DNA from: Lama guanicoe
Taxonomy: Eukaryota
Reading direction: 5' to 3'
Length of the DNA stretch: 64,000 nt
Assembly (NCBI GenBank): GCA_013239625.1
Contig: MU054472.1
Coordinates: 1,281,356 to 1,345,355, forward strand
Both the position numbers and the translations under genes were made by a program. Position 1 is the first letter of the stretch, and each line of letters starts with the position of its first letter. Under the pieces are notes generated by a model. It had not been told where the DNA came from, made no database searches, and worked only from the letters and a program-made list of their open reading frames with translations. Of the stretch, positions 41,701 to 42,989 are shown piece after piece.

Positions 41701-42989
41701 GGCATGGGAGTCAGCCCTGCACGCTCGGTCAGTGATAGGGAGCAGAGCAGGGAGGGAAGGACTGCTGAATTCAGGGCTTCAGCTCACAGGAAACCACAGA
41801 AACAGATCCTTGGTAGCCAGGTTAGGGACACTGGATGGTGGCAGGATGGGGCAGTATGGGGAGAGCTGAATGCTACTTACTGTTGGAGAAAGCGCAGGGA
41901 AGGCTACGTTGGAAATGTCTCCCAAAGGGCCCTTCGAGGGGTGGTGGGGGAGGGAATGACACCCTGCCCCATTAGCATATGATGCCATACGGTGGAGGGG
42001 AATTTGCCCTCTGATTTGGGTTGCCCTCCTCTCCACTCCCTGCCCCCAGGATCAGTGAGGTGGAGCCCAAATACTACGCAGATGGGGAGGATGCATACGC
42101 GATGAAGCGGGATCTCACCCAGATGGCTGATGAGGTAAGAGCCCCATGGGGCCATGCAGTCCTCGTAGACAAAGAAAAGCAAGTCAAGCAGGGGCGGCCC
42201 TGAGACAGTTGGAGGCCCACGATGGCTGGAGGAGAGATGGACGAGGTGCCAGCCCTGGCGGCTGTGTGGCCAGGAGTCACGGCCCTCTCCCCTCAGTTTC
42301 CTTAGCTGCCTGGTGGGGAGCTGGACCTTAGTAGGGCTATAAAGGCAGCCGTAGGCCCAAGGTTCCTTTGTCTGAGGCGTGATGTGAGAGGAGAGAGGAG
42401 GCCCCTGGATGTGCTGAGAGGCAGGACCCGAGGACGGCCAGGGCCTGCTCCAAGGCTCCGGGCTCAGATAAAGCCAGGCTGAAGAGAAAGTCAAGGTTCT
42501 GCCCAAGGCTCCTCAGGGGCCCCAGCCCGTGAGGGAGTCTTGGGCACCTGCCCTTTCCAGGAGAGGCCGCACCAGGACTCAGACTAGGTCTCCTGACTCA
42601 GTCCTGGGTTTCCTGACCCGGGCCTTGCCACCTCTCCTCTTGCCCCCGGCCCCAGCCAGCAACAAGGCAAAGGCGGTGGGAGAGGCCTTCGTGGTCTAGA
42701 AATTTAGGCCCTGTCTCCTTCCTCCCGCCTCCCCCTGGGCTCCTGGCGGCAGCTGAGGCGGCACCTGGAGCTGAAAGAGAAGGGCAGGCACGTGGTGCTG
42801 GGCTCCATCGAGAACAAGGTGGAGAGCAAGGGCAATTCACTTCCAAGCTCCGGAGAGGCCTGTCGTGAGGAAAAGGGCCTGGCTGCTGAGGATAGCGGCG
42901 GTGACAGCAAGGACCTCAGCGAGGTCAGCGAGACCACAGAGAGCACCGATGTCAAGGACAGCTCAGAGGCCTCTGACTCAGCCTCCTAG
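38438..42989 (+). CDS. NAA10: N-alpha-acetyltransferase 10 (NatA catalytic subunit, ARD1), 235 aa, 8 exons
   Basis: Exons 38438-38458, 38929-39027, 39477-39535, 40272-40317, [exon 5 in gap 40385-40540], 40670-40714, 42050-42134, 42753-42989. Protein [34 protein letters not shown]...HGHITSL...[18 protein letters not shown]...SSEASDSAS*. Introns are present, so this is not the retrogene NAA11. Confidence 0.98.
39660..40146 (-). mobile_element. Old L1 (L1MC-like) 3' fragment in NAA10 intron 3
   Basis: tttacagaaaaactgagc...tagagttcccata...cagtttcactgccctgaaa...ctggctttcacttag...gtattccattg. Confidence 0.65.

Follow-up and report, generated by a model that had tools for sequence, protein, structure and literature searches.

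The region described here belongs to a 64,000-nucleotide window of guanaco (Lama guanicoe) DNA, to which all positions below refer, and, as judged from its translation, it is the 3' end of NAA10, with the last intron and last exon, on the plus strand (Table 1). NAA10, a human disease gene, encodes the catalytic subunit of the main N-terminal acetyltransferase. The original prediction had already named the gene, and comparison with solved NAA10 chains of 235 residues, which we take to be human, bore this out: the in-frame translation of exon 7 is identical to residues 130–157 at 28 of 28 positions, and the 78 codons from 42753 are identical to residues 158–235 at 76 of 78. The 3' end of exon 7, ATG GCT GAT GAG/gtaag at 42134, completes a codon. 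Exons 1–4 can also be read in the window, with the start codon ATG at 38438 and exon 4 at 40272–40317, and a run of 156 Ns (40385–40540) lies inside the gene between exons 4 and 7. Since exon 5 is presumably under this run, the full NAA10 coding sequence of this copy is unreadable. The surroundings of the start codon (37655–38524) are very G+C-rich, carry spurious open reading frames of up to 289 aa on both strands, and look like a CpG-island promoter. At the other end of the gene, a short GT-rich run (43118–43140) lies just 3' of the AATAAA, in the place typical of a downstream cleavage element.

Table 1. Features of the 3' part of NAA10, including the candidate alternative last exon.
Feature	Positions	Strand	Remarks
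NAA10 exon 7	42050–42134	+	Final full codon GAG = residue 157; donor GT 42135–42136
Intron 7	42135–42752	+	618 nt, 63% G+C
Branch-site-like CCTGAC	42612–42617	+	A at 42616; G of the alternative AG 39 nt further 3'
Pyrimidine tract of alternative acceptor	42623–42653	+	26/31 pyrimidines; 42602–42653 free of AG
Alternative acceptor AG	42654–42655	+	CCCCAG/CC; longer exon would begin at 42656
Last-exon extension (predicted)	42656–42752	+	97 nt = 32 shifted codons + 1 base
Canonical acceptor signals inside extension	42698–42736	+	Putative role
Canonical exon-8 acceptor AG	42751–42752	+	ggcggcag/CTGAGG, cut at 42752/42753
Canonical coding part of exon 8	42753–42989	+	Residues 158–235, stop TAG 42987–42989
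Dual-frame part (predicted)	42753–42868	+	38 shifted codons + stop
Shifted-frame stop TGA	42866–42868	+	Exon-8 positions 114–116; canonical codons CGT GAG
AATAAA poly(A) signal of NAA10	43056–43061	+	Sequence

The claim that intron 7 holds a second acceptor, composed of CCTGAC, a pyrimidine tract and a CCCCAG ending at 42655, 97 nt 5' of the canonical one (97 mod 3 = 1), held at every coordinate. The CCTGAC matches the branch consensus yUnAy, and the TGA within it (42614–42616) is the upstream bound of the shifted open frame. At positions −22 to −3 the alternative acceptor has 17 pyrimidines out of 20, compared with 13 out of 20 at the canonical exon-8 acceptor and 16–18 out of 20 at four real acceptors of NAA10. 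Among 58 AGs scanned, the longest AG-free zones are those before the alternative AG (54 nt) and the canonical AG (45 nt), the zones of the other 56 all being 23 nt or shorter. All matrix scores given here are rough, as they come from a short and crude acceptor matrix. On this matrix the alternative acceptor scored 0.51, which placed it sixth among the 67 AGs of intron 7, and the canonical exon-8 acceptor scored −1.30; the NAA10 acceptors of exons 2, 3, 4 and 7 scored 4.57, 1.37, 6.63 and 6.76, respectively. The top two AGs of the intron were decoys at 42559–42560 (7.4, above every real NAA10 acceptor scored) and 42295–42296 (6.06, above those of exons 2, 3 and 8), and exons starting behind them, at 42561 and 42297, meet stops after 8 and 2 codons, respectively.

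Another AG is present at 42658–42659, 4 nt past the alternative AG; an exon starting there, at 42660, would add 93 nt in the canonical frame and meets TAG (42705–42707) after 15 codons. The possibility that the upstream branch-site-like element serves the canonical AG was rejected because seven AGs lie in between, by which the AG-free zone needed by so distant a branch point is broken. A repeat search of 42135–43100 yielded a weak inverted repeat (42369–42395 and 42632–42658; 27 nt, 70% complementary) in which a purine-rich stretch of the intron faces the alternative acceptor's pyrimidine tract and AG. Pairing of the two arms could hide the alternative site in the pre-mRNA, or the repeat could be a product of chance. 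Considering these features together, we regard the alternative acceptor as plausible though not compelling, and as no worse than the site it would compete with.

Splicing to the alternative AG would shift the reading frame, and the proposed consequences, 70 open codons and a protein of 227 residues, were reproduced exactly: 42656–42868 translates to 70 residues and a stop, identical to the peptide first proposed, and 157 shared plus 70 new residues make 227. Stop to stop, the shifted frame is open only from 42617 (83 codons). The list of open reading frames contains none started by ATG, GTG or TTG in this frame, and the product was thus correctly said to be absent from it; equally sound was the statement that the stop falls within the last exon, to which the rule for junction-dependent nonsense-mediated decay (NMD) does not apply. 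The predicted alternative tail is basic, with a pI of 11.6, a net charge of +5 and Pro, Gly or Ala at 27 of its 70 residues. The canonical tail of 78 residues is acidic, with a pI of 4.7 and a net charge of −7. Both tails are probably disordered, judging by their composition. Within the extension, the first part (42656–42690) is purine-rich (23 of 35 bases), the sole A residues upstream of the canonical acceptor are found at 42698–42706 and are likely the canonical branch points, and the pyrimidine tract of the canonical acceptor occupies 42710–42736.

The layout of this candidate exon is that published for a mouse isoform. In the available portion of its description, mouse ARD1-225 equals ARD1-235 except for nt 472–562 of exon 8 (91 nt), and its tail differs from residue 158 onward (PMC6063946); an alternate 3' splice site and a frameshift are given for the variant in the part available of a second report (bioRxiv 10.1101/014324). 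By arithmetic, the published 91-nt insert and 225-aa length place the stop of the mouse form at exon-8 positions 114–116. The guanaco DNA has, correspondingly, an intron-7 AG that would lengthen exon 8 by about as much (97 nt, or 6 nt more, with an equal frame shift), a tail changed from residue 158, a shifted stop in exon 8, and a product of about the same length (227 versus 225 aa). We rejected the shared stop position as evidence because any insert of 1 mod 3 ends at that same TGA, so that the informative part is only the occurrence of a good AG at a distance that differs from that in mouse by no more than 6 nt.

The description of the predicted form as ARD1-225-like stands in part, as its position, frame shift, point of divergence and stop all match what the available mouse account gives. 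The accompanying remark, that similarity extends into the nominally intronic part, does not speak for coding, as part of the extension holds the signals of the canonical acceptor. A run of 11 tail residues is encoded by the canonical pyrimidine tract (42710–42736) and, since this tract and the branch A residues both lie inside the extension, the intronic part is expected to be similar even if it does not code. The remaining 38 tail residues are the other frame of the highly conserved exon 8. As read from this layout, only the first 14 or so tail residues (42656–42697) would be free of constraint from canonical splicing or from the exon. The likeness of the 70-residue tail as a whole to the mouse ARD1-225 tail was part of the original prediction, and we treat it as an assumption.

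The reading that we prefer, and hold with middling confidence, is that 42656–42868 represents the positional counterpart of the exon-8 extension behind mouse Naa10-225 (ARD1-225). The alternative site is most likely orthologous in position to the acceptor used in mouse, and the frame behind it is intact; we put detectable use of the site at about even odds. What the sequence establishes is the anatomy of the site and its agreement, in position, frame and stop, with the published mouse account; that the acceptor is used, and that a protein is produced and has a function, is our inference. In some transcripts the exon-7 donor (42134/42135) would pair with the AG at 42654–42655 rather than with the canonical AG at 42751–42752, with the A at 42616 serving as branch point and the stretch 42623–42653 as pyrimidine tract. 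The last exon would grow by 97 nt and the frame would shift by one, leaving residues 1–157, which comprise the whole catalytic GNAT core, unaltered, while the acidic 78-residue tail would be swapped for the basic 70-residue tail ending at the TGA of 42866–42868. With its stop in the last exon, such an mRNA would be expected to escape junction-dependent NMD. By analogy with mouse, the 227-aa product would keep NAA15 binding and its localisation could differ, and it would lose C-terminal regulatory sites of NAA10 such as S228 (PMC6063952, in the part available). It should remain fit to act as the catalytic subunit, only with its regulatory tail exchanged, based on the reports, in the accessible part of the source, that residues 1–160 are enough for the NatA complex in structural work and that mouse Naa10-225 co-precipitates with Naa15 (PMC8376253).

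A simpler account, to which we give a substantial though less than even chance, is that the CCCCAG is an unused cryptic AG followed by an open frame that arose by chance, with only the canonical acceptor used and no 227-aa protein made. The intron is G+C-rich and long open frames are common locally, so that an open frame by itself carries little weight: in the neighbourhood, 964 of 2575 windows of 97 nt were open in a given frame; the extension's own 97 nt, when shuffled, were open in 8673 of 20,000 cases; windows of 210 nt were open in 203 of 2462 instances, or 128 of 2004 when those touching the tail were left out (6–8%); and 10 of the 84 stop-free runs in 40729–43400 reached at least 70 codons. 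The 38 downstream codons, moreover, are the other frame of a conserved, GC3-rich exon, and synonymous resampling of them left the shifted frame open in 2.7% of cases with uniform weights and in 13.5% with the third-base weights of the gene. A canonical codon with T as its third base creates a stop in the shifted frame if the next codon begins with AA, AG or GA. Canonical codons 1–38 contain 15 such pairs, of which 11 could take a T synonymously and none does, versus 10 of 33 ending in T in the rest of the visible coding sequence (Fisher one-sided 0.037, a post hoc and within-gene comparison). Together with the resampling shares, this result counts for the preferred reading, though as no more than a hint, since the frame had first been picked out by its openness. 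A chance origin is also in keeping with the sixth rank of the acceptor on the crude matrix, with the lack of any protein carrying the tail among those of 46–145 aa, and with the statement, in the available parts of two reports, that the isoform is absent in human (10.1101/014324, PMC6063946). It accounts less readily for the agreement of position, frame and stop with the documented mouse isoform (PMC6063946, as far as the available text goes). Nor would chance lead us to expect a branch consensus, a pyrimidine tract like those of real NAA10 acceptors and an AG-free zone longer than any other in the intron at the same site, or an acceptor that beats its canonical competitor on every crude measure.

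We consider it improbable that the branch-like site and tract are instead intronic regulatory elements, acting as a decoy 3' splice site or as sites for pyrimidine-tract proteins, to which the open frame would be incidental; such elements might tune canonical splicing or the retention of intron 7. This idea draws on the RNA data, in which runs recorded or guessed to be RNA held 0.58–0.61 of 112 sampled words of 42030–43060, compared with shares expected from exon lengths of at most about 0.33 for the mature canonical mRNA and about 0.43 for the extended form. Because the observed share is above the spliced maximum, intron 7 sequence must be present in the RNA assemblies. The canonical acceptor is, in addition, weak near its AG (13 of 20 pyrimidines, and −1.30 on the crude matrix), and the inverted repeat described above could mask the upstream tract. 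However, the RNA nature of several of the runs is a guess, an equal share would also result from pre-mRNA or from carried-over DNA, the repeat is weak, and the equivalent mouse site is a productive acceptor according to the available parts of the mouse reports (10.1101/014324, PMC6063946). The intron 7 words are pre-mRNA, retained intron or DNA, and are neutral on the 42134–42656 junction that the preferred reading calls for. Retention of intron 7 would itself add 22 codons up to a TGA at 42201–42203, for a product of 179 aa whose mRNA would likewise escape junction-dependent NMD.

Searches with the tail and the exons were conducted exon by exon. A protein search with the 83-aa frame (42617–42865) covered proteins of 46–145 aa, a range outside which isoforms of 225–227 aa fall, and gave no candidate, six having been left out before scoring. 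The tail had no matches among solved structures and none among Pfam families, and its best Atlas value (0.77) was of low recognition and provided no lead; an Rfam search over 40729–44000 also had no matches. In the literature, the tail peptides occurred in no relevant paper (one unrelated bacterial vaccine paper matched), no paper was found for ARD1A together with dual coding, and none for NAA10 together with camel looked relevant by its title and the start of its abstract. In the main texts on the 225-type isoform, so far as these were available, it is linked to no species other than mouse and human (10.1101/014324, PMC6063946, PMC8376253, PMC6063908, PMC11873779, PMC6063952, PMC2841038). Public gene annotation may already list a 225-type isoform.

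The interest of a camelid counterpart derives from the place of the mouse isoform in a dispute. In the available parts of the reports, the 225-aa isoform is described in mouse only, the human gene is held unable to make it, and the mouse-only isoform is invoked to explain conflicting HIF-1alpha results (10.1101/014324, PMC6063946). The differences reported between the mouse isoforms are in cytoplasmic versus nuclear localisation and in the effect on HIF-1alpha (10.1101/014324, PMC6063946, PMC6063952, in the portions available), and the HIF-1alpha claim is disputed, with two reports that are contrary by their titles in the reference lists of PMC6063946 and PMC6063952. If a distant mammal also makes a 225-type isoform, then the isoform is ancestral and not a rodent oddity, the human loss is a derived state, and the basic tail merits functional study. 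A stronger version holds that dual-frame reading of the last exon is old, the isoform predating the split between rodents and laurasiatherians, with both frames selected and the isoform lost secondarily in the human line. We think this unlikely; if it were true, the disputed isoform-specific link to HIF-1alpha could be tested in a second, distant mammal. Loss is clearly tolerated, given that the acceptor is said to be absent from human DNA (PMC6063946, in the part available). If the site is not spliced, what we describe is simply a cryptic site and a chance open frame. The value of the observation thus lies in pointing to a cheap check, not in a completed discovery.

Of the known systems, mouse Naa10-225 (RefSeq variant 2 of mouse Naa10) is the closest counterpart of the preferred reading. 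As far as the available descriptions go, both have a further 3' splice site ahead of exon 8 whose use gives, or in guanaco would give, an insert of 1 mod 3 and, behind an unchanged GNAT core, a tail that departs from the canonical one at residue 158 and stops at exon-8 positions 114–116, in the last exon. They differ in that expression, protein and HIF-1alpha activity are documented for mouse only, whereas the guanaco form is known from its sequence. Human NAA10, with isoforms of 235, 229 and 220 aa, shares the gene and the canonical junction between exons 7 and 8. In contrast to the AG, branch-like site and pyrimidine tract present here, human genomic DNA is described, in the part of the source available, as having no acceptor site for splicing of the 225 type, so that the transcript cannot form (PMC6063946). 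It is plausible, from the layout of the exon, that the predicted 227-aa form is a further member of the known mouse isoform type. A more distant parallel is provided by exon 2 of CDKN2A, a dual-frame exon from which alternative splicing produces two unrelated protein segments, in p16 and ARF. In both genes one stretch of exon can be read in two frames through the choice of the upstream splice, but in NAA10 the second frame would touch only the probably disordered C-terminal tail.
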